Source: Hyphochytrium catenoides
Taxonomy: Eukaryota; Protista; Hyphochytriomycota
DNA: 36,184 bases
Reading direction: 5' to 3'
Assembly (NCBI GenBank): GCA_900088475.1
Contig: FLMG01000615.1
Location: forward strand, 1-36,184
Below are positions 726-33,330 of this stretch, in pieces (the first letter of the stretch is position 1; each line of letters starts with the position of its first letter). The notes under the pieces were generated by a model, which saw only the letters and a program-made list of their open reading frames with translations, ran no database searches and was not told the origin of the DNA. Position numbers and translations under genes: made by a program.

Positions 726-3437
726 ATGGGGATAAAAGAGCTTCTGCCCAGGCGGAGGCGATCCTGGAGGCCATACTTGGCAGCAGGTTTGTCCAGATCA
801 GACGTCTACTCCGCTTTCTCCTTCTCTCCCTCTCCCGTCTTGTCTCTCTTGCATCATCCTCGACCGTGTCTTCTCAGTTTACCTTTTACTCCTCTCTCTG
901 TAGCTCTCTCTGCCCCCTTTGTCTCTCTGTCTACTCTGGAGTTGACTTGTGCTTGTCTCGCTCTCTACTTGGACTGTCCGCTCTCCGTCTCCTTTCTCAT
1001 TCTTCGCCCTCGGGCTTCATCCTCTAGGTCTCTATCTCTCTTCTTCTCTCTCTGGCTACTCTCTTCCGTCTGACCCCTTTGTCTGTGCAGCGGTGGTCGC
1101 CTATCTCTCCCGACGCCAGCTGCAGTTCCTGTTCTTCATTCTCTATACGTTTTACCTCTGTGGGCCCTACGCCCTCCTGCAGCCTGACCCCATCAAATGG
1201 TGGGTGCAGCACACCCTCTGGTTCTTAGGCATAAGCCTGAGAAAGAAGGGAGATGTCCCCATTGTGAGGGATCGGAAGGTCATCTTCCTCGCCAACCATC
1301 GCTCTTGGGCAGGTCTGATAGCCTTCAAAACCCTCTCTCCTCTCTCTCTCTAATTTCTCTCTCTTTCTGTCTCCCTTTCTATCTCCCTCTCCCTCCCCCT
1401 GTCTGACTCTTTCCCGTTCTCTGCCTCTTCCTTTCAGTTAATGTCCCTCTCTCTTTCCCTCTGAGAGCCTATGCGGTATGTTTCTTGCTCCTCTTTCCAT
1501 GGCTGGCCAGCGATGTGCTCTGCCCTCATTCCTCTTTAGCCTCGGGACCCTTGGCGGCCTCAGTGATTCAATAAGAATTGGCCTCTCACTCTCACGCTGA
1601 TCTTCGTTCTCTCATCTTTGAAGCCATCTTTCGCGCGCTCGTCGCTATCTCTCGTCCTGTTTCCTCTATCGTCTCCGGCCAGTCTCCTTCATTTCTCTCC
1701 GTGATCGTCTGAGCTCGTCTATGATCTGGAAAAAGGGGAAGTTATATCTAACCTTGCTGCTGGGACAGACTTCTTCCTGCACTTCAGAGTCTTCGAGTTT
1801 GAAAATAACATTGTCTCCAGGTACGCGAGGAGTTCTCTTCCATTAAGTCTTGCCGAGGCATTCGCTACCTCTTTCCTCCCCGTTCTCTTGGTTCTTGTCA
1901 GATCACCTCTCACTCCCCTTTATAAAGAACTTCTCTCTTCGTTGTACCAATGAGCCCTGTCATCTAGTGCATGTTCATTTGCTCCATGCTTCACTGCCGG
2001 CTGCTCTGTCGGTCTCCTCCCCACCTCTCTCTCTCTTTCCCATTCTCTACTTCTATCTCTTCTCTGTCTCACTATCAACCATTGTTCTTAAGCTTTTTGC
2101 TCTTCCTCATACTCGAACTCTCAAGACTCTTCTCTTTGTATCTTAATAGCCTCCTAACGCTTTTTCTCTGCCTCAACCACCGCACGGCTCTCGTCTGTCT
2201 TCTATCGTCTGCCGCTTCCTAGAATGGCAATCGCATTCATCTTTCCCTTTATCTACTGGGGAAGTCGAGTCCACAATGCTGCTTGGTTCTTCCAGCGCGG
2301 TCAACACTCTCTCTCTTGGTTCTATGACTGGCTCGACCAGAACTTCAATGACCCTCGCCTTGCGCGGAAGGGGCTGCTGGTGTACCCTGAAGGCCATAGA
2401 AATCTTAACCCAGACCCTCTGCCTCTCAAGTCAGGAATCATCCGGGTACGAGCGGCCAAGCAAAGTTTGAAGTGGAAGCTTCTGTGTCTGTGACGTGTGT
2501 CGATCGATTCTCCCCTCTTCTTCTTTCATACGCTCCTTACTCTTTCTTGTTAGCTAAGAGCTGTAGTCTCTCTTGCCCTCGGTCTCTACATCTGGTCCCC
2601 TAATCAAAGGAACTACTATCTCTCTCCATCGCTCTTATCTCTGCGTCTCTCTCCCTCTCTTTCTTCCGTTGTTCTCTCTATCTCTCTGTCTTACATCGAA
2701 ACTCTTCTCTTACTATAACTGCGTGCCTTGGCTGCCTCGTCTTCCTGACCTGCCATGGCTGCCTCTTCTCCCTGACTTGCCATGACTGCCTCGTCTCCCT
2801 GGCTTTGACCTCTTTTCTCCTAGCGATGTCGGACGTCCCGCTCATTGTTTTTCTTTACCTAGTTCTCCTACTACGCTGCTCATCTTTCGTCTAAGGTCTG
2901 TACGCGCTTGAAAGTCCCCTCTCTGGCTTCTTTCTCTTCTCTCTTTTGACTTGATCTCCTTCAGTATGCGTACGACAGCAAGATCCCGGTTCAAATTGCT
3001 ATCACAAAGGGTAATGAGCACATTATGAATGAGAAGGCTTTGACCGTCCAGACAGGAGTGAAGGTGAGCAAGTACAGGTCCGGGAAGAAAGCCCAGCATT
3101 TTCGGAACAGAGAGAGAGAGAGAGAAAGAGAGCCAAGGCTGGAGAGAGAGCGACAGAAACAGAGAGACACACACAGATAGAGAGAAGAGGAAAGGAGAAA
3201 GAGGAAGAGACAAGAGGCGTAGAAAGCCGAGATAGAAAGGGCCTAGCGTGGCGCGACTGACCATTACCCATCCAACAGGTAGACTATGAGATATTCGAGC
3301 CAATCTACCCGGAGAACCATAGCACACCTGACGACTTCATTAAGGAGGTGCACAATCGGTTTAACGGTGCATTCCATAAAGTTTTCAAGGGTCAGGAGCA
3401 GCCTAAAGTGATGTCAAAGGAACTTTCTAGGCTATAA
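726..3437 (+). CDS. 1-acyl-sn-glycerol-3-phosphate acyltransferase-like (PlsC/LPLAT family), 6 exons, ~271 aa
   Basis: Phase-compatible GT-AG exons 726-786, 1091-1312, 1769-1820, 2223-2445, 2965-3063, 3279-3437. The spliced product has catalytic block I 'NHRSWADFF' (NHxSxxD, split by an intron), block III 'LVYPEGHR', 'LPLKSG...KIPVQI' and an N-terminal hydrophobic segment. Confidence 0.9.
2724..2804. repeat. 27-bp minisatellite, 3 copies, in intron 4 of the acyltransferase
   Basis: Unit ~tgccatggctgcctcgtctccctgact starts at 2724, 2751 and 2778. Confidence 0.85.
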
Positions 3438-3707
3438 GAAAGCCCATTGTTATAACCTTCTCTTTCTCTGGCCCAGCGTCCTGGCCATAGGTCTTGAAGA
3501 GCCTTTATATTATATTATTTTTAACAAATAGCGGAAGGAAAGAACGAGAGCAAGACGGTGCAAGAGAGAGAGACAACTAGATCTGTACAAGGTCTCCCCC
3601 CTAGGCTCTACTAGCCAAAAAGCTCGGTTTTTACAAAGAGAACAGGAAAAATGTAGTTGGGCACTGACGCGGGACTTTCCGCTAAGACCAAAGGTGTCAT
3701 CTGGTCA

Positions 3708-5526
3708 TTAGAGTTGCCATAGTTCCTGCTCCTCTGGCATGCCTTCGTCGTTCAATAAGCAGAAGCTGCAGATCGGACATTTCGTACTCTGCCGCAGCCA
3801 CTGAATACGACATAGAGCGTGCATGGCAAGAGCTTAGATTAGCGATGAAGCGACCTCCCAACCTATGCCTTGGAGGTTGCATCTACTTCTCTCCTTTTCT
3901 TTCCTTCTTTCTCTCTCTCTCTCTCTCTCTCCCTATGTGAAAAGGTTGTTCAAGCGGGCGACGTACCTCATCAATGCAGCTTTTGTGATATTTATGAAGA
4001 CAGAATAAAGCCCGCACCAATTCACCGTCTTCAAAGGCTTGACAGCAGACAGCGCATCTACATTAAGTAGAACGAAAGGCATCATGAGTGGACCAAGTCG
4101 TCAGAAGGGCAAGGCAAGGAAGAAGGGGGATAAAGTCTGTGAGGGAAACGAAGAGAAAATAAGAGAAAGAGAAGTGGTCTAGCGAGTGAAGAACAAAAAA
4201 GAGCGCTTATGTAGAAGAGAGAAGGAAAAATAAGCGTACTCTGTATTCTTGTCTTCGCTGTTCTGACGCTTTTCGTATGGAAAGGTTGGCAGAGAACTGA
4301 TCACGCCGATAGAAAGCCCTCCTTGGTCATTCATCTTCGCCATGTCTCGGCTATTTATCTCTTGAATGCGACGAAGCAACCTCAGCAAGCGCTGGCATTA
4401 GAAGAACGAGAGCGAGTGGGTTAGTGCACTCATATCAGAGGAACCGTATCTTCAAAGAGTCAAGGGAAACATGGCGAGAGGAGAGGTAAAGAGAGGCGAT
4501 GATTTGCCCTACCCTTTCCCTTTGAGGAGTTGGAGAGCCGAGGAAGGAGCTTGTTCTGGGTTCACGGAGGAAGGAAGGGCCCATGTGGTCCATTGACAGA
4601 GAGCGGGGCCTGGGAGGTGGTTGTCTTCTGATATTAGAGGGCCGGACCTCCGGAAGAGCTGTCATTCAAACAAGGAATGCAGTCAAAGATCGAAGAGTGA
4701 CATTAGTTTGCTGCATAACGACAGAGGAAAGGCGAGAAGAACAAAAACCAGCGAAAGAGAGAAAACTATGGGTCTGTAGATGAAGCATAGAGAAGAAGAG
4801 AGAAAGAGAGCCATAGAGAGAGAGAAGGGAAGGTTTCTTCGAACCAGGAGTGAAGAGACACCTGAACTCTGTCAGAGGTGGATGTAACCTTCGAGAAATG
4901 CGATTAAGAGTCAGCTGTATAGCAAAGATATTAGTCCTAGGGAAAGGGAAGGAAGAGGAGAGCAGAGAGGCTAAGATACCTTCAATGATTCCATTGGCCA
5001 CCAGCTCATCAATCTGCTCTTGCCTCTCCTGTTCTTCCGTCTCTAGCTCAGAAAAAGCCAAACGTACCAGCTCCTCTGTCTCAGCCGCATACCACTGGGT
5101 CTCGCGTAGGTTAGGCTCCATTATAGGACATATGATGGGTCTCGGTACAGACTTCGCTAAAGTCTTTGGCAATGGCGGATGGAGAGGTTGCTGGTCTTTC
5201 CTCAGAATGGGACGTTTATTCAGGGCCTGCTTTTGGATCTCTTCTCTTTGCTCAGCGAACTCATCACTTTCAAAGAACATCTGTCGATAAATCTCTGTCG
5301 TTGTCTTCTCATCCTCGGTGAACAACGGGTTCACGGGTTCACGGGTCGGGCCGCGCTGCCAGCACAGGAGACATTAACCCACGTCGACGGGAGGGGAAGC
5401 AAGCAATAAAAGAGAAGGGGTAAAAATGAGAAGAGAGAGTGAGAGAGAGAGACAGAGGAAAAGATGAAGGTTTCTCACCAGAAGCCCGCCCTTAGGATAA
5501 AGCCAGCCAGCCAGCCAACCAGGCAT
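3708..5526 (-). CDS. RING-H2 finger protein (putative E3 ubiquitin ligase), 6 exons
   Basis: Phase-compatible exons 5526-5479, 5355-4980, 4658-4513, 4391-4240, 4057-3967, 3800-3708. The C-terminus reads 'ISSLPTFPY...ECAVCCQAFEDGELVRALFCLHKYHKSCIDEWLRQSTKCPIC', a C3H2C3 RING with the conserved Trp. The RING exons are absent from the ORF track; the 5' exons are less certain. Confidence 0.88.
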
Positions 5527-5802
5527 GTTGCTTGAGACAGTCAAGGTGAGCTTGCCACCAGTTCGAGCGTCAACGTGACCTCCTCCTGAGGTTTAGAATC
5601 CCGATGAATGATCTCTAGAGTCTCTGCTGCTTCTCGCCCAACAGCCTGTGGCGAAGCACACTGTCGATAGAACTTTAACCTGTCTTCGCTAATAATGCTT
5701 CCGATGCATCAACAGAGATCTTCTACTCTACTGTACCAGCCTAGGACGTACTCCGAAAACTCTCAGAAAGGTGGGAGATCGCTGAGTAGAAGACTCTAGG
5801 AA

Positions 5803-6046
5803 GTGTTTCTTTCTCTTTTATGTCTCTCCCTCTCTCTCACTCACACTCTCTCTCTCCGTCCTCTCTCTTTCTCTTTTTCTGTCAGACACACCCTCTCTCT
5901 CACACCTCTACCTATCTCTCTCTCTCTCTCTCTCCCTCTCTCTCTCCCCCTCTCTCTGTCCCTCTCTGTCNNNNNNNNNNNNNNNNNNNNNNNNNNNNNN
6001 NNNNNNNNNNNNNNNNNNNNNNNNNNNNNNNNNNNNNNNNNNNNNN

Positions 6047-6108
<62 letters not shown>

Positions 6109-6120
6109 TCCTCTCTGCCT
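5803..6120. repeat. Compound (CT)n microsatellite surrounding an assembly gap (N 5971-6046)
   Basis: CT/CTGT runs flanking 76 Ns. Confidence 0.95.
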
Positions 6121-6857
6121 CATTTCCCGCCCTTCGTCTTTTGCCGATCAGAAGGGTCGAAAAACAGGAGAGTCAAGCGGCTTATTATCGGAAAGGACTA
6201 GGCTCCTTTTAGTTATATCTGCTTTTCGGGGCGGTTAACGATTGAATCAGAAGAGTGTACGAAAGCGCTCCACTGTCCAAGCATTTCTTAGCATGATCGA
6301 ATCACCGCATCTAGAAGCCCTTTCGCCTAATTTGAACTTTGGCCTCTTGGCCCATAAAGTCTCAGGTAGTACGTTATTCTCCTATAGTACTGGCCCATCC
6401 AATTGATTGTAATGGCGATTACATGAATAGTGGCCCGAAGCAAACCGAGCAACCTCTCTCTTATCCATGATGGAGGCAGAATGGCCCCACCCGCCCTCTA
6501 AGTGCACTCGGATAAAGCAACCCTAATCCTCACCCACCCACCCTCCAGTGCCAGTTCCCAAGTAAGATGATTGTCAAATATGTGAGGATGACCTACTAGA
6601 TCCCGCGATGTCAATAATTCTCACTATCACAAACAAGCGTTTAGGGCTTTGTTCTGCGTGCCCTTTGTAAATTGACTAATGGTATTCCGTGGTGCGTGTG
6701 AAGATGTGAAGATAACGTTTCATTGTCGACAATGCAGAGATTTCGGCAAATTACGTATCGGTATGGGCGCTCTCAACGTTTCGAAAATAAAAAAAAAAGG
6801 GGAAAGAAAGAGAGGAAAAGAGGCAGAAGAAGATTGAAGGGGTAGCAGTAATGAGCT

Positions 6858-8629
6858 ATAGAACCTCTGGCGCAGTCTCTCTCTCTTGATTACCTTGAAA
6901 CCAAGTCCTTTCCGTCAGCTCTCATACCAACATGGAAAAACGTTGAGATTGTGCCTGACCTACTACGAGATGGAACGTGGAAACGTCCTTTGACGGCCAA
7001 TATACCATTCAACAGCTTGCCATAGTGAAGACATCACTGGCAGCTCTAAGACTAAAGCAGGGCGATAGAAGGCGCGAATTAAAGCCGACAAATCCCAACA
7101 CTATACAAGGAAAAATCATGATTTTGAGCTTCACTTCGCTTTGACCGACTTCTCATGGCCAGCGCTTCTAAATTATCACAGTCGGATTCTTAAGGCGGTC
7201 CAAAACAATGTTACAGGGATGACACAGGCGCCTCTAACAGCCCATATTCGAGATACAGGGACGGTGCTTTCTTACTGTGGCCATGACACTAGGGCCCAAG
7301 TGGACAGCACTACTAATGATCGACACGAGAATAACAAGACGATGCTTTGTGGTGATGATGAATCTGTACTTCAGTCTGCAAGTATTCTGTGAATAACAAT
7401 AAAGATTTTGCTACCCCACGGCCCTCAGAAGCTAGAACTAGGGACGATGGATAGGTCTGTTGCCCCACCGGTCCTCAAGCTGTTCTCGTCTGCTGAAGGT
7501 TTCGGTAAGACTAGAGGAAGGCTAATCATCTATGCTCATCATCCGTCTTCAAAAATGATGGTTAATTTGGAACTTACAGGCAACTGGCCCTTGTCCTTAT
7601 AGATTATTGAAAATATTTGCCAAAGAAGTTAGGGAAAGAGCTCTCTTTATGAATGAAGGGGTTGACTTAGCCTAAACAAGGCTCCTTGAAGTACACACAT
7701 TCTGATGGATGACAGTGTGGTTGGACGCTGTTCTGGAATGAAAAAAGAGGAGGATGAGTTTACTATAGATTATAAACTTGAGGCGATATCCATAAGCTAT
7801 TGATTCCAGAAGTATTTTGGGGACTAACTATGCAAAGCTATCAGATGATATGCAAGAAATTGTGAGAAAGCAGAGGGATAAAAAAGCTCTAAATAGTAGA
7901 GCCACCGAGACTGAAGCGAGAGTGATACTACCTCATCGAATAAATAGTTGCCAAGAGATGACTTTGTCACAGAAGAGATTCGGCATTGATGGCCAAGCGG
8001 AAGACATTTAAAGGAAGTCCGAAAGAGGAAAGTCTTTTAGTACAGGCACCAAGTTTCTAAGCGAATTAAGGACAGTCAACGTAGGCCATGAAGTGGATGG
8101 TTCCTTCTTATCATAAGAGATAAAAAAAGTAGAAAAAGAAGAGAAAGATACGAGTCAACAATAATCAACCTTAAAGGAAGGCAGGAAGCTGGTGCCTACT
8201 CGAACGAAGAAAAGCAAGGAGGAAACAGGCTCTTTCATTCCTGACACACATTTGGGCGATACTAATAGTGGCAGTGACTAGGAGCAAGCCAAGCAGTTTG
8301 AGAGCGAAAAAAACATGGTCAGATACCATTATGATGGAGAAAGCAACGCGATGAAATGTTATTAACGGACTTAGTAGGTCGGCAAGTTGACCAGAACAAA
8401 AAGCAGGAAACATTAAAGAGGAACACGTGAGTCATGAGAAGAAATGAAGAAGCCATTTCTGCCTAGGAAGTCTGTCAAAGGGATAAGTGGAGCATTAGGT
8501 TACCAGTTAATAACACCTCAAGACTTTATCGCAAGAAATATACAGAAGAAGAACAACAGGAAGCAAACCTTCTTGATATTGGCCTGGGATGTCACAATAA
8601 CCCATCCTGTGCTTATTGATATAGGGTAG
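6858..8629 (+). pseudogene. Decayed reading frame(s), possible P-loop NTPase remnant
   Basis: ORFs 7141-7392 and 7408-7602 share one frame that stays protein-like from ~7022 to ~7630, broken only by isolated stops; contains 'LFSSAEGFGKTR' (Walker A-like). Further fragments at 7817-8011 and 8444-8629. No family recognised. Confidence 0.3.
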
Positions 8630-25034: not shown

Positions 25035-25098
25035 CCTCTCTCCCTCTCTCTCTCTTCCTCTCTTCCTCTCNNNNNNNNNNNNNNNNNNNNNNNNNNNN

Positions 25099-25854: not shown

Positions 25855-28800
25855 ATGTGGACAGAGGATCCTGACGCAGCATCCTTCAGGGATAGGAGGA
25901 GAAGAGCAAGGTCGTCAAGCAGGAAATCTTCCTTGGCTGGCGACGGAGATGTCTCCTCACTTCCTTCTCCCTCTTATGCTTCTCTCTCCTTCACCTCGCC
26001 CTCTCCTCGCAAGGATATCCCTCTAGGAGTTCCGTCCGAACGGTTGACGACTCCTCAGTCTAGCGAGTCACCGATGGCTTCCCCTGATCTCAACCCCATT
26101 TCTTGCCCAAGGTACAGGCGCTCCTTCGCCCTCTTACTGATTGTCATGCTCTCTCTCTTATCTCTGCTGTCTTTCCATCCTCCATCTCGTCCACACACAC
26201 GCTCTCTCTCTCTTTCTTCTCTCTCACTTTCCAGTAGAATGTACCTTCATTATCTCCTTTTTGACCTTTGTCTTTCTCTCTCCCTTTCTCCCTCCGATAT
26301 CTCTTCTTCACCACATTGCTGGGTGAAATAGAAAGTTCTTTACGATTGCTCAGTTAGCATATTCTCTCCTTCTCCTAGCAACTGCGCGTTCTCTTTCTTA
26401 GCAGCGCTAGCCAGAGATCTATCCCGCGATTTGCTCTTTAACTTGCTGTTCATATTGTCTCTGAACTTACAGTTTCTACTTTGCGCACCTCCTCATATCT
26501 CACGCTGTACAGAGTTGACGAACATCTAGAGAAAGAGAAAGTTTCATTTCAGCTGATCTCGGACTTTAAGCCCCCTCAAGCTCTGTCAACAGCTGTACCT
26601 GCACCGTCAGGCTTCTCGCCAGGTGTCTCTCTTTGTACCACCTCCTCTACCTGGCAGATCTCTCTCCCTCTCGCGTGTACTGTTTGCATCTTCTTTCCAT
26701 CTTTAGTTTATTCGCCTCTAGCGGTCCCGGCTAGGGTCAATCTTGCTTCTCTACTATCTTCTTCCTTGTCCTTAGCTTCGACGCTGGTCCTCCTTTCTCT
26801 CCCCTCTCCCGCCTCTCTCTCCTCCCTTTCTCCTATCTCTGTCTAACGATCTAACTGCAATCTACTCTTCGTTCAAAAGCGATGCCTCTCTGGAGGAGAG
26901 ATAGAGAATCAGCATCAAATGCTGCAGAGATTCCCAACCCAGATACACCCAGAAAAGCCAGGAGTTCGGCCATGAGCTCAATCAATCTCTCCTCTCCTTT
27001 GTCCTCCCCTTCTGCTAATCCTCCCTCTATCTTCAAGCTGTCGCTCAAGTCTGAGATAGTCCGCCGACAGGAAGAGACAGTAAAGACGGAGAAGATGGTG
27101 AAGAAAGAGAAAGAAGAGATGAAGCGTCGCCTCTTAGGGTTATTCTCTACTTACTCTGAGAAACCAAGGGACCTCCTGCAAGCCATCTTAGACTTTCAAG
27201 GGCTAGAAGATGAAGAGTTACTGGCCTTTCTTTTAGACAAGACACCTCTTCCTCGGCTTATGATGCCTCTATCTTCGTCCTTCCTTCACAATCTTCTGGC
27301 ACTGCTTGCAGAAGAAAGGAGAGAGTGCGAATGCGACGAAGAAGACTTTCCTCGCCGCCGCAGATTGTATCTGATCTCCCAGCTAGTGAAGAGAACAGTG
27401 AAAGGCAGCGTGGTTGCCAACGTAGAAGTGGGAGATAGCCCCTGCGATAGCACCTCAAGCAGTTACCCGCTCTGGCGTTCACTCTTTGCTACCTTAAGTA
27501 AAGCATCTTGGCAGCTGGATCCTACTCATATCGCGGTCTTCAGTCAGGTGCGCTTCAGAAGATTGTAAAGTCCCTCGCTCGCTTTCCTATTCTCTCGTGT
27601 CCGCTGTATTATCAATAGTGCGCATCCGCTCCTCTTTACCCCTGCCAGGAATCTTTGCTGTCTCTCAGCGGCTATTGCGCTAGAGGCTTACCTGCTTTTG
27701 GGGTTCTGGGTGGTCTCTTTCTTCATAGATAACTCCCACCAACTTTCCTTCTTCTCTGTTGTTTCTCTGTAACTCTATAATCTCTTAACACCTTTCCAGA
27801 TTGCCAGTCACTTTGTTCTCGACTGTGGCATGGGACGGAGTATCCTGGAGTTCCTAGCAGCCGATGCCGAAGAGAGAATGGGGCCTAAAGCCTCAGACCT
27901 ATCACTGAGACTGAGTAATATGCAGATTATGGTAGGAAGAGAGATAAAAAGAACGATGACCCATGCCAAGCTATGACCGTTCAAGATGATCTTCTTCCTA
28001 ACTCTGCTTTTGTTGAACAAGTTGTATGGATCTGTGCGTCAAGAGCTTTATTTCTTCGCCTGTTTGGAGTATAGCTCTCCCCACGTGGTCTCTTCCTTCC
28101 TTTTTCTCCATTTTCACTCTCCTTTTCTCACTCTCTCTCGCCACTCTCTCTTCTCTTGCGCAGGATCCAGAGTCCATTCCGTACACGGATCTCTTCATAA
28201 AGTGTCTTGGTGACGACTCGCTGCATCAGTTCCTTCTCCGTTTGGTTTATTCGGAGCACTCTCAGGAGGCCATCACCGCCCTCCACAGGACCAAGTTGAT
28301 TCCTCTTCTCCTCCACACCCTGTCTTCTGCCCCCTTCTCCTCCCCTGCCACGGAAAACACTGCCCTCATGCTGAGGGAGCTGATGCATGCTCCTTACATC
28401 TCGTTAAGAGGCGATGCTATCTTTGCCTTCGAGGTTAGTGCAAGAAGGCTGCCTCGATGCTCTGTCCTTACTGGGGTGGGCAATGCTCTCTCTCAGTCTA
28501 TGTTCTGACGTATGTCGTTGCTTTAACATCTGATAAACGACTTGTCTCCTACTGGAGCTAAATGTTCTTTGCAATCGTCATAGTTGCATCTTTCCATTTC
28601 TCCATGCTCTTGTCGCTGCATAGATGGGATTGGTTTCCCTCTTCCCTGCCTTGCTGGTATTGACTAGAAGTTGCCCTACATTTCCGCTTGGCCATCTCGA
28701 TAAGGAGACCCTATCTCCTACTTCTCTGCCGCGATGCTCAATTACTTTTTTCTGCTGGCTGCTAGGTGCCACGTCTGAACGTTCATGAGCCAGTCTACCA

Positions 28801-31800
28801 GTCAATCGCGGGATATAAGGACGGTGAGGAAGGCACGAATCATGTGCGGAAGTACAGCAGTAGGAAGGTCCAGCAGCTGGTGGAGGAGCTGCTGGATAAG
28901 CCTCAGTTACTGGAAGAACTCTTCAATAGGGCGGGAGATGAGCTGGAGTATTGGAAGACTGTTAAGCAGGAGAGCGCCATACCTAGAGGTAACTCCCAAC
29001 TCTCTTCCTTCTCGGCACGCCCATGTCTACTTCGGCACACCGGAGCCATTCGGTCACACAAAACGTACCAAATCTCTTTGCAAGCCAAGACAAGCGAACG
29101 TTGCTGTTCTCGTCATGATCATGCCTTTCTAAAGACGCAATGCTTAGTCTTTCTCAACTTATTCCGTCTCCTTGCTTCTGTTTTCAGCGTCGTATCTGCT
29201 GTTCCTCAATGAACTGCTGAAGTACGTACGGAAAGGACCTCAAGAGATGGAGCAGGAAGGAGAAGCCGTTTCGGTACGCTGTGAAGGTGGAGGCTTCACT
29301 TGTCCGGTCCACACCCTAAAAGCTGGAAAGCTACTGCGAGGCAGTTACGGACCGAAGGGCCAGGAGGGATGGTTTGTGCTCAATGCTGTCTCAGGTGCGC
29401 AATCGCTCCTTTCACACACTCTATAAGTGTTTTGTCTCTTATTCGCCTTCCATCTGTCCTAAGCACTCGGCTCCTCTATACTGTCTCCAGTCACTGGTGC
29501 GGGGGCACGTTCTCCTTTTTATTCGTACGATTTTCTGTCCGAAACGGGCATCATGTCCGCCTACCTGTCCAAACCTCTTTCGGATGCACCCTGGAGTGTC
29601 TCATCCTTTCACTCTTAATTTGCTCTTCCTTCTGTACCTTCTCTGGCAGGACTCTTAACAAGAGAGGTGGAAGATGTTGCCTCGATGCACTACTCTGACC
29701 AGAAGATAGAGCGGACCTTTGACCTCAGGGATATGGAGAGAGTACAAGCCTCTTCCTGGCATCCATTCGGCTTTTCCCTGCTCCTCCGCTTTTCTTCCTC
29801 TCACAATGATCAGGATCTTCCAGTCCTTCCTCCCTTGGAGAAAAGTGGAGTTGGGGAGGAGGAAGCGAGTAGAAGGAAACTGGCTATCTCTCTAAGGAGA
29901 AATGGGAGCTCCTCCTCTCAGTGCTATGAACTTCTTCTTGCCGCCGTTTCGGATAAGGAGAGAGAGGAGTGGATGGCCGCCCTGACAGAAGCAATTGAGG
30001 GCCGTGCTGCAGTAGTGCAGAAGCCCTGTACCGTTGATGTGAGGAAGACCGAGGAAAGTGTTAAATTGCTCTCAGCGCTTATGGAGAAGAACGTCGTCAG
30101 GGCTATTCCGCAGCTTTTACCTCAGTTGCAGGTACGGTTGTTCCTTCGTTGTGGAAGGCTTATCAGCTTCAATCTTAACGTCTTTGGTTCACTCTCTCTC
30201 TCCTCTTGTAGGAGAAGAATTTGCCTCGACGCACGCACTTGGCCTATCTCTGTCTAGCTATCAATGGCTTCATAAAGCTCCGCTCTGAGAAAGTAAACGA
30301 GGTCCTACTGCAGCGAGGGGTTTTCTTTTTCTATCTCCGGCTCTTCGAGGCTGTGCCCAAAAGCTCAATAGTACACAGGTTAGTTCAAACACTTGGAATG
30401 ACTTTTTAACATGATATGGTCTAGCAATATCAGCTACCAATACCATGATACGTCTTCAGGTGCCAGTCCTCTGGTCCTTAGGAGATTCTAATTCGCCACA
30501 CCCACTGCTCCGTCGTCATCTGTACTCTCTCTTACAGGCATGTGACGGAGGCCATTCTATCTTTACTTTCTGAGAGCAACGAGACTCCTGCTACCCAGCT
30601 GCTCCTGCTGGAGGACCTTCTAGATAACAATCGACTCTTAGACTTTATCATTGAGGCACATCTAGCTTTTCCGAGAAAAGAGTACAGGGGCTTTATGACA
30701 GACATCGCAAATGCACTTTGCCTGGTGGAGAGGTAAGGTACCTCTCTTTCTGCTTGTTCCGTCTCACATTTAGGCTCTTCGTCTATCCTCTCAGCCAGGC
30801 GGCTAATGACTTCTGGTTCTCTTCTTTCGTTCCTTGTCGATAGCAATCCTGCCCATCCTGCCAATCTCCTTGTAAGGAGACTTATAAGGAGTAATCCACG
30901 CTGGGCGGAGTTTGTTGAAGAGACCCTATACAATGTCAACAACAAGCGATCGGATCTCAGCCACCTTTCGCTACCTTCCACTCCAGATTTTCAGACAGGT
31001 AAGCAGATCTTGGGCTGAGTATGGGCATATGAAAGGAGAACGAGAGCTCTCAAGCATACATAGAGCAACAGAATGTTAAGAGTGTGTGCAGGAGGGAAGA
31101 TCGCAAGGGTGGACATGCCTAATCCTCTACCTGCTTTTTGTCTCTTTCTCTACTTCTCCCTCTGTGTGTCTTGATCTCATTTCAATCCCCCCTAACTTCA
31201 TTGATGCTTTCTGCAGATATCTTGATGCAGATCTTGAGGAATGTCTCTGAGAAAGGGAAGTTGGAAAGCCTCGTTGTTCGAGAGAACGCAGTATTTGGCT
31301 ACCTGTACAAGACAACCGTTTCCAGTGACAAAGCTTCGCTAATATGGAAAGGTCAGCATCGACAATGGTCACGCTTTCTATGTCTAATTCTTTATGTGTT
31401 AATGTCTATGTCTCTATCTACAGTTACCTTTGGCGATACTCTCTTTGTTTTCTTCTTACTCTCTCGGCCGCCACGACACTCTTCAAGACTCTTCTGCTTT
31501 GAGGAGAGCCGTCAAATCCTAAAGATCTATAGGATAACCTTGTATTCACTCTCCCGTCATTGCTTCTGCAGGGATTATAATGGTAATGGACCTCAACAGC
31601 AAGAGACTCTGGTACTTCTATCCGGATGATTTTTTCCATCGTGGTATGCCTATTGGCCTTCCCTCACCTCTCTTTCTCTCTGTCTTTCTTTCTCTCCATT
31701 TCCTCACTCATTTCTTCCTTGGTCATACGCCTTTCTCTTCAGTCCTCGCTCTCTTCTTTTTCTGCTTTTCTCTCTCCCCATCTCCTCCTTTGCTTTATGA

Positions 31801-33330
31801 TGCAGGTCTTCTTGCTGAGGCCATGTGCTCTAAGTTGGACGAGAGCTCTCGTTCTCCTTTCATATGCCAATACTCCTTCTGCTCTCTGGCATCTACCTCT
31901 TTGTCATTCTTGGTTGTCTTGCCCTCTGAAACATTCGCCCTTCTCTCATTCCCGGACAGGATCTAAAGGCAACGAGCATCCGTTCTGGAAGTTCGTGGTC
32001 CCTCGGTCGGTGCATGAGAGGTTCACAAGCGGAAGAGATGAGACCGGAAAGGATGTGGGGCACTTTGGACTAGTTGTTGGCTCAGATACAAAGGAACTCT
32101 TCCTTTCCACCTCTTCCAGAGAGGTAAGCCGGCAGAAGTTCTTAGGATACGAGAGAAAAGAGCGTGACAAAGAGAGCGAGTGCGAGAGAGAGAGAGAGTA
32201 AGGGAGTAAGGAGAGGAAGAGAGGTAGCCTAGATCTTCTGCTCAGAAGCTATGATGGGAGCAGAGGACCGGGGTGATTCATGCTAAACTGAGAGCGACTT
32301 TTAGGGTCGCAGACCTGTTAATGTCAATAGTTAGGGGCGAAACATGATAGATGCGGGCTCTACGCTGTACTGCAAAAACGGCAAAGCCATGAGATCTAAT
32401 TTTATTGTGCGAGCAGCATCGAGAGGTCTGGCTGTCCATCATCAAAGAAGCAGTCGCAATCAACGAGGAAAGCAGGAAGGAGTATCTTTCCCGGCGGGAG
32501 GAGGAAGGAGAAGATAAAGCTCCGGCAAGTTGTCAGCTCTGCGGAGGCAAGTTTTCTCTACTAAGAGGAAGGATTCGGCATCAGTGCCGCCGCTGTGGGA
32601 AAACGATATGTGAAAAGGTGAGAGACAGCATCTTCCAAGCTCAACCGTGGTACATCCCGTTCCTTGTCCTCCTTTAGCATCCTGTCTTCGATATGTGACC
32701 AACGAGTTGGCCTTCTTCCCTCCTGCCTTCCCTTTCGTCCCCTCTCTGTCATTGCCACCCTTAACCTCCTGCTGCCCCTTACAGTGCGGTAACAGGAAGA
32801 AGCCCTTGCCAGAGTTTGGGCTATTTCGGCCGGTCCGGCACTGCTTCCCGTGTTTTGAAGAGACAGGAGGAGAGAGAGGAAGCAGAGAGCCAGTGGCTGC
32901 AGTGCAACAGATTGCTCAGGACGTGCTGACTGTGAGCATTCTTCCTGTCTCTTCCTCCGAGAGTCTGACCGATCTCGGGCTTATTCCTCGACCATCGTCC
33001 ACTGAGGACCTTCACGAACTCTCAGCTAAATCGTCAAAGATACCAAGATCTCGGTCTGCAGAAAGGTTGGCAGAGCTTGGCCTTCTCCCTCGATCTGCCT
33101 CTCGAGAGAAGCTTTCGAAAGGAAGTGGAGGTCGAATGCCAAAGGCCGCCTCTGCCGATAGTCTGAGTGCGATGGACAAGAGAGCAAGAGAAGCCTCTTC
33201 TTCCTCTTCTCTTTCTTCTCGCTCGTCTTCAACGTCTTCCCTGGTGAAACTGTGGATGTCGGAGCAAACCGAAGAAAAGAGAAGCCTTGAGCTGGAGGAG
33301 ATGGCAGGAGTCTACTGGGACGCATCTTGA
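25855..33330 (+). CDS. SAPS (SIT4-associated / PP6 regulatory subunit)-like protein with an internal PH domain, a second PH domain and a FYVE finger, 16 exons
   Basis: Phase-compatible exons 25855-26111, 26513-26622, 26880-27547, 27800-27931, 28164-28433, 28766-28988, 29188-29394, 29650-30131, 30212-30378, 30538-30732, 30844-30998, 31217-31351, 31572-31643, 31960-32123, 32417-32617, 32785-33330. SAPS-like: 'LHQFLLRLV...LIPLLL...ENTALMLRELM', 'LFEAVPKSSIVHRHV', 'RKEYRGFMTDIANAL', 'WAEFVEETL'. PH1: 'LKAGKLLR...WFVL...LAAVSDKEREEWMAAL'. PH2: 'FGYLYK...LWYF...LFLSTSSREHREVWLSII'. FYVE: 'CQLCGGKFSLLRGRIRHQCRRCGKTICEKC...VRHCFPC'. Confidence 0.85.

Follow-up and report, generated by a model that had tools for sequence, protein, structure and literature searches.

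What kind of protein is encoded by a long, intron-rich gene of Hyphochytrium catenoides in which sequence resembling a phosphatase scaffold stands next to predicted lipid-binding domains? The gene lies at 26882-33330 on the plus strand of contig FLMG01000615.1 (assembly GCA_900088475.1), of which positions 1 to 36,184 were analyzed; these 36,184 nucleotides (nt) are referred to as the window. A sequence-only reading of the locus had proposed a SAPS-like helical scaffold that is split by a PH domain and extended by a second PH domain and a FYVE finger. SAPS proteins are helical scaffolds that bind and direct the protein phosphatase PP6/Sit4. The interpretation favored here is that the locus holds one gene for a highly divergent SAPS-family protein, in which a PH domain was inserted into the middle of the helical domain and a PH and a FYVE domain were added at the C-terminus, and that the product would serve as a PP6-directing scaffold. 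This interpretation is put forward tentatively, at a confidence that falls slightly short of even. The predicted order of SAPS-like, inserted PH, SAPS-like, PH and FYVE parts holds at the level of exon-wise tools.

SAPS-like sequence on both sides of a PH domain

The exons were scanned one by one against Pfam (24,736 families), with cut-offs of 25.6 bits for SAPS (PF04499), 25.1 bits for PH (PF00169) and 27.8 bits for FYVE (PF01363). Exon 2 (28164-28433) matched positions 24-91 of the SAPS profile with 14.2 bits (E 0.02), and exon 7 (at 30539-30730) matched positions 348-409 with 12.6 bits (E 0.065). Both scores are below the threshold, and each was the sole Pfam match of its exon, with per-family p-values of ~8e-7 for exon 2 and ~3e-6 for exon 7. 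The two matches are colinear with the profile and lie on either side of the first PH domain (PH1), with ~194 non-PH residues between them compared with 254 profile positions. Their simple sum, in which exon-wise scores are added and which is not a whole-domain score, is 26.8 bits against the cut-off of 25.6. Since the two exons had the same one of 24,736 families as their sole match, in the right order and with these per-family p-values, it is unlikely that the matches arose by chance. The SAPS-like sequence that had been placed around the PH domain was thus found on both sides of it, and exons 2 and 7 provide the split profile match that had been suggested as a check. Both halves of this match are weak and sub-threshold in the exon-wise scan.

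A canonical SAPS gene is present elsewhere in the genome (L012, G000:C8:6500-16499, ~3350-7300 of the locus). It consists of many exons, gave a genome match of 50.9 bits and carries the usual N-terminal LL..DD.TLE.LLEED block and GYMGHLHRIA. When this gene was scanned exon by exon, one exon scored 53 bits, another 14 bits and the rest nothing. Because even the canonical gene mostly scores 14 bits or nothing, exon-wise Pfam scanning is insensitive. Exon 8 of the gene studied here aligned with the corresponding exon of the canonical gene at a BLASTP E of 0.001 (SNPRW..FVEETL versus SDPKW..FVKTTL). Exon 6 resembles the PRLG...LDLFF stretch of the canonical gene by eye only, with BLASTP remaining blank. 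No SAPS structure was found among PDB sequences when exons 2 and 7 and one canonical SAPS exon were used as phmmer queries. Compared with the canonical SAPS gene of the genome, the SAPS part has diverged much further. As this canonical gene exists elsewhere, the PP6 system is presumably present in the organism and the gene at 26882-33330 would be an extra, specialised paralogue.

PH1 spans the end of exon 4 and exon 5 up to ~29997. Exon 5 holds ~3/4 of the domain and, scored alone, matched positions 17-104 of the 105 positions of the PH profile (29652-30020) with 21.4 bits and an E of 3.6e-4, just under the cut-off of 25.1 bits; its best named Atlas clusters were PH families in 10/10 cases. 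The domain has a loop of ~40 residues and a closing helix, EREEWMAALTEAIEG, in which the conserved Trp is kept (EREEWMAAL). The claim of a PH domain within SAPS-like sequence is supported in that the PH match of exon 5 falls between two SAPS-like exons. Instead of one continuous helical domain without other globular domains, a PH domain is found between the SAPS-matching parts, and because of this interruption the gene is a variant and not a typical SAPS member.

Exon structure of the gene

Twelve predicted exons with GT-AG borders can be chained into one open frame of 3414 nt, which comprises 1137 codons and the stop, and the splice phases agree at every junction of the chain, in line with the consistent phases that had been noted before. 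The gene sequence is free of Ns. It starts with an ATG at 26882, with an in-frame stop just upstream, and ends with the stop codon at 33328-33330. Position 28164, which the sequence-only reading had taken as the start of the gene, is the acceptor of exon 2; exon 1 (26882-27547) had been missed, and the gene is longer, running from 26882 to 33330. The DNA of the window is eukaryotic, and its GT-AG introns are short and C- and T-rich. When the optional exons are counted, one of which is probable and the other possible, the gene has 12 to 14 exons and encodes about 1140-1205 residues. The exons are as follows.

Exon 1, 26882-27547, plus strand: MPLW start and a Ser/Pro/Lys-rich extension of ~75 residues, followed by the helices with which the SAPS-like domain begins.
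Exon 1b, probable extra exon, 27800-27931, plus strand: 44 codons including SILEFLAADAEE, phase 0/0.
Exon 2, 28164-28433, plus strand: N-terminal part of the SAPS-like core, with the Pfam SAPS match.
Exon 3, 28766-28988, plus strand: helical, assigned to the central part of the SAPS-like domain; consistent splice phases.
Exon 4, 29188-29394, plus strand: one last SAPS-like helix, after which the insert begins with the initial strands of PH1 (LKAGKLLRGS...GWFVLNAVS), assigned by pattern.
Exon 5, 29650-30131, plus strand: remainder of PH1 to ~29997, then helices re-entering the SAPS-like domain.
Exon 6, 30212-30378, plus strand: SAPS-like helices past the insert; strong acceptor and donor.
Exon 7, 30538-30732, plus strand: C-terminal SAPS-like part including YRGFMTDIANAL, with the Pfam SAPS match.
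Exon 8, 30844-30998, plus strand: final SAPS-like segment (NPRWAEFVEETL), with the donor that leads on to the PH-FYVE part.
Exon 9, 31217-31351, plus strand: linker, then the start of the second PH domain, PH2 (AVFGYLYKTT).
Micro-exon 9b, possible, 31572-31643, plus strand: 24 codons ending in SKRLWYFYPDDFFHR, which would supply strands beta2-beta3 of PH2.
Exon 10, 31960-32123, plus strand: middle of PH2, including GHFGLVVGSDTKELFLSTSS; strong donor GAG/GTAAGC (the slash marks the splice point here and below) and consistent phases.
Exon 11, 32414-32617, plus strand: C-terminal helix of PH2 (EVWLSIIKEAV), acidic linker and first half of the FYVE finger (CQLC...RHQCRRCG...CEK).
Exon 12, 32785-33330, plus strand: remaining half of the FYVE finger (C...VRHCFPC), Ser-rich tail in which a motif occurs four times, stop codon.

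The Pfam scan gave no match for exons 1b, 3, 6, 9 and 10, for exon 4 alone or for the FYVE half of exon 12 alone. The donor of exon 1, CAG/GTGCGC, is phase-compatible with the acceptor at 28164. The MPLW start of this exon resembles the MFW(K/R) start of SAPS proteins, and its Atlas features are generic HEAT/ARM-type helical clusters only. Among the exons of the gene, exon 3 reached the top coding score (0.554). The splice sites of exon 4 were read directly and have consistent phases, and the acceptor of exon 9, TTTCTGCAG/, is phase-compatible with the donor at 30998.

Exon 1b is probably a real additional exon. Its borders are a GT donor and an AG acceptor that has a pyrimidine tract; the frame is kept, and the codon-usage score of 0.351 lies in the top 1.3% of intron windows, with negative scores for the remaining two frames. 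It would divide the 616-nt intron between exons 1 and 2 into introns of 252 and 232 nt; the mean intron of Hyphochytrium is 208 nt (PMC5795050). For micro-exon 9b (72 nt), which is a possible additional exon, AG/GT bounds are present, phase 1/1 is kept and the reading SKRLWYFYPDD would suit strand 2 of a PH domain. In coding score the micro-exon does not differ significantly from introns, as 16% of intron windows score as high, and its splice sites score modestly.

The intron between exons 10 and 11 (32124-32413) is purine-rich, with a pyrimidine fraction of 0.35 compared with 0.52-0.75 in the other introns of the gene, and the acceptor of exon 11 is a weak NAGNAG (32414/32417). At 25855-26331, 0.5 kb upstream on the same strand, a Ser/Pro/Arg-rich open frame of 158 codons from its ATG was observed that matched none of the tested families; it may be a small gene of its own or a spurious frame. 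Ns mark an assembly gap near 25050-25080.

The putative second PH domain, the FYVE finger and the tail

PH2 (~31280-32460) is spread over three or four short exons (9 to 11) and is recognized by sequence pattern only, namely a first strand GYLYK, the stretch GHFGLVV...ELFLSTSS and the Trp-containing helix EVWLSIIKEAV. The second PH domain of the sequence-only reading thus agrees with a PH-like pattern at this position, and no exon gave a profile match to PH here.

The FYVE finger is better defined. Exon 11 (32414-32617), which carries the first half alone, matched Pfam FYVE with 30.2-32.2 bits, above the cut-off of 27.8, and in a genome-wide scan FYVE was found at 32510-32629 with 33 bits. The finger has eight cysteines in four CxxC pairs, CQLC, CRRC, CEK/C and CFPC, the third of which becomes complete when exon 11 is spliced to exon 12 in phase 0; this restoration supports the junction. 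The first half can be aligned with the FYVE domains of Vps27, WDFY3 and EEA1; its turret loop is longer by two residues and retains the hydrophobic FSLL. With a score above the cut-off and all eight cysteines, the FYVE finger proposed earlier is upheld, and judged from its sequence the fold is FYVE.

The lipid pocket of the finger differs from the canonical form. In FYVE domains both the WxxD motif and the second His of R+HHCR contribute to the pocket for phosphatidylinositol 3-phosphate (PI3P). Here no Trp or WxxD is found ahead of the first cysteine, the basic motif is RGRIRHQCR, in which RHQCR replaces RHHCR and a Gln takes the place of the second His, and VRHC stands in place of RVC. Because the pocket is non-canonical, binding of PI3P is uncertain and cannot be assumed. 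Three further FYVE genes of the same genome (L006, L008 and L010) have WxxD and HHCR. Another one, L007 (G000:C1556:4364-7483), has RRHQCR for RHHCR and no Trp before the first cysteine; together with the gene studied here, it may form a small subfamily of variant FYVE fingers.

The tail encoded by exon 12 (32930-33190) is Ser-rich and contains four spaced copies of the motif (I/L/M)P(R/K)xxSxxxL, which read IPRPSSTEDL, IPRSRSAERL, LPRSASREKL and MPKAASADSL; two of the four are preceded by (D/E)LGL. These motifs resemble a series of basophilic-kinase or 14-3-3-type sites, and the protein could be regulated through them.

Searches for relatives

Exon 5, the fast-evolving PH1 exon, had no match at E <= 0.001 among 1.84 billion representative proteins. 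In a word search with exon 1, which was limited to proteins of 122-388 residues and had full-length kin out of its reach, 0 of 634 candidates scored, and none of 393 pattern matches to exon 2 in metagenome contigs was confirmed. In the genome itself exons 1, 2 and 7 matched only themselves, no paralogue of them was found, and the gene is single-copy there. The blanks in the collections indicate only that close relatives of the searched exons are absent from them. As records of the genome studied here may have been excluded from these collections, nothing follows from the lack of a match of the gene to itself. Since the sole length-independent search used the fast-evolving PH1 exon, an oomycete orthologue of full length may have escaped detection if its exons are divergent.

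In a full-text literature search no publication was found in which SAPS is combined with PH or FYVE, nor was the layout encountered in a database; this agrees with the sequence-only reading, in which the architecture was not recognized as a described one. At least 40 places in the genome encode FYVE, and 272 FYVE proteins have been reported for Phytophthora sojae (PMC8233823).

Proposed mechanism and alternative explanations

In the favored interpretation the PH insertion would lie between SAPS profile positions ~91 and ~348. The SAPS part would hold the catalytic subunit of PP6, while the PH-FYVE module, aided by the FSLL turret loop and flanking basic residues, would dock the complex on a phosphoinositide-rich endomembrane, where the phosphatase could act on local substrates. 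The inserted PH domain may provide a second contact to membrane or protein, or may serve as a lipid-dependent switch of the scaffold. As the FYVE pocket is non-canonical, the lipid is possibly not PI3P, or binding may need the PH domains too.

A number of observations weigh against this interpretation. Each SAPS match is sub-threshold by itself, and for the equivalent profile stretch 12.6 bits were obtained here compared with 53 bits in the canonical SAPS gene. Apart from exon 8, the exon pairs compared with the canonical gene by BLASTP and by Smith-Waterman alignment with shuffles gave nothing or noise. In the exon-wise Pfam scan PH2 obtained no profile match on any exon, and the FYVE finger lacks the Trp or WxxD ahead of its first cysteine and has RHQCR for RHHCR. 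The evidence for a single transcript consists purely of splice-signal statistics. No relative was found, so conservation gives the model no support, and in a lineage that is rich in FYVE fusions a new FYVE combination is less surprising. Binding of PP6, finally, is something we purely infer. The targeting of PP6 to endosomal or phagosomal membranes, as put forward in the sequence-only reading, is plausible and is weaker than was stated there, because of the divergence of the SAPS part, the non-canonical FYVE pocket, a transcript deduced from splice statistics only and the frequency of FYVE fusions. A more far-reaching version is doubtful; in that version the gene would encode the first SAPS subunit with built-in lipid readers, PP6 would act on the endosomal or vacuolar membrane, the inserted PH domain would be a lipid-dependent switch, and the whole would be an invention of hyphochytrids or of a narrow group of stramenopiles.

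Among the alternatives, the most probable is that the helices are derived from SAPS and do not bind PP6, the protein being an endomembrane adaptor or tether with an ARM-like scaffold for other partners. The extreme divergence (12.6 bits here versus 53 bits in the canonical gene) fits this explanation, as do the noise-level pairwise likeness to the canonical paralogue, the restriction of the Atlas features of exon 1 to generic HEAT/ARM families and the fact that the genome already has a canonical SAPS gene. However, the remnants fall in conserved SAPS blocks (profile positions 24-91 and 348-409 and the W..FV block of exon 8), and the survival of these blocks suggests constraint on the function of the SAPS family. 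Loss of PP6 binding is considered rather unlikely.

The second alternative divides the locus into two adjacent genes, a SAPS-like gene with an inserted PH domain that ends at the stop codon 31016-31018 and a gene for a small Phafin-like PH-FYVE protein that starts from an ATG at 31204. For the junction in question, a model of donors and acceptors was trained on the other introns of the gene, with the donor at 30998 and the acceptor at 31217 held out. Among the 1847 GT sites of the window, the donor at 30998 (CAG/GTAAGC) ranked in the top 0.11%. It lies six codons ahead of the in-frame stop, and a comparably strong donor in the last few codons of a gene has a chance expectation of ~2/1000. The acceptor at 31217 was moderately strong (top 10% of AG sites), and the 218-nt spacer was non-coding in all three frames according to the coding score. 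The frame of exon 8 does meet a stop six codons past the donor; from the ATG at 31204, PH2 would start ~27 residues in, as is normal for a small PH-FYVE protein, and the held-out acceptor is merely among the top 10% of AG sites. However, the intergenic spacer would measure just 185 nt, whereas the gene is actually flanked by CT-rich non-coding DNA over 0.5-2.8 kb; the 30998/31217 junction is consistent in phase, and so strong a donor would rarely occur this close to the end of a gene by chance. Since the SAPS part has a very strong donor six codons short of its stop codon, one gene is favored over two; the locus is probably a single gene, and a pair of separate genes is quite improbable. The ATG at 31204 is in frame and lies 13 nt upstream of the acceptor of exon 9 (31204-31216). 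Together with an internal promoter it could give rise to a short PH-FYVE isoform, even beside the long fused transcript.

It is highly improbable that the helical region is unrelated to SAPS and that the two Pfam matches are chance hits on a generic helical-repeat protein with PH and FYVE domains, an explanation for which it can be said that helical repeats draw weak profile matches, that both matches are sub-threshold (E 0.02 and 0.065), that no further exon matched SAPS in Pfam and that no solved SAPS structure for a fold test was found with the canonical SAPS exon as query, but against which stand the identity of the only match of both exons (one family of 24,736), their right order, a separation of ~194 residues that is about right for 254 profile positions, a chance of ~3e-6 per exon for the second match given the first, and the independent match of exon 8 to the equivalent block of the canonical gene.

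Comparison with known proteins and implications

The gene described here resembles the SAPS subunits of PP6/Sit4 (yeast Sap4/155/185/190 and human PPP6R1-3; PF04499) in its weak, colinear matches to N- and C-terminal parts of their profile, and the W..FV block is common to this gene and the canonical SAPS gene of the genome. The gene differs from SAPS subunits in that its helices are interrupted by a PH domain, in its PH-FYVE module, in its repeat-bearing tail and in its much greater divergence. SAPS proteins are not known to carry lipid-binding domains.

The C-terminal module, a PH domain followed by a FYVE domain, is reminiscent of Phafin (PLEKHF1-2), in which PH is directly followed by FYVE and which comprises PI3P-binding proteins of endosomes and lysosomes. 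The distance from the Trp of the PH2 helix to the first zinc-binding cysteine is ~38 residues, which is presumably close to the spacing in Phafin. Unlike in Phafin, PH-FYVE is here the tail of a protein of ~1140 residues, the FYVE domain is without WxxD and has RHQCR, and PH2 is without profile support.

Two further proteins illustrate how a phosphatase may be combined with such domains. SARA (ZFYVE9) is a FYVE protein that docks PP1c on endosomes via a short docking motif. By the same general logic, the FYVE-bearing protein described here would place a Ser/Thr phosphatase on an endosomal membrane, with the difference that a whole PP6 regulatory scaffold would be fused to lipid readers. PP4R3 (SMEK/Psy2) is a scaffold of a PP2A-like phosphatase that has an N-terminal PH-like peptide-binding domain of the EVH1/RanBD type and ARM-type helical repeats, and thus also combines a PH-superfold domain with the helical scaffold of a PP2A-like phosphatase. 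In the gene described here, in contrast, the PH domain lies inside the helical domain, and the family that was matched is SAPS and not SMK-1.

Knowledge of how PP6/Sit4 is targeted to substrates concerns mainly SAPS and ankyrin subunits, neither of which is known to carry membrane-binding parts. The weight of the present finding is limited by the obscurity of the organism and by the free shuffling of FYVE domains in its lineage. If the favored interpretation is correct, a SAPS scaffold fused to PH and FYVE domains would represent a naturally occurring case in which PP6 is targeted directly through lipids, and would provide a handle on a role of PP6 at endomembranes, for example near TOR signalling, autophagy or vesicle coats.

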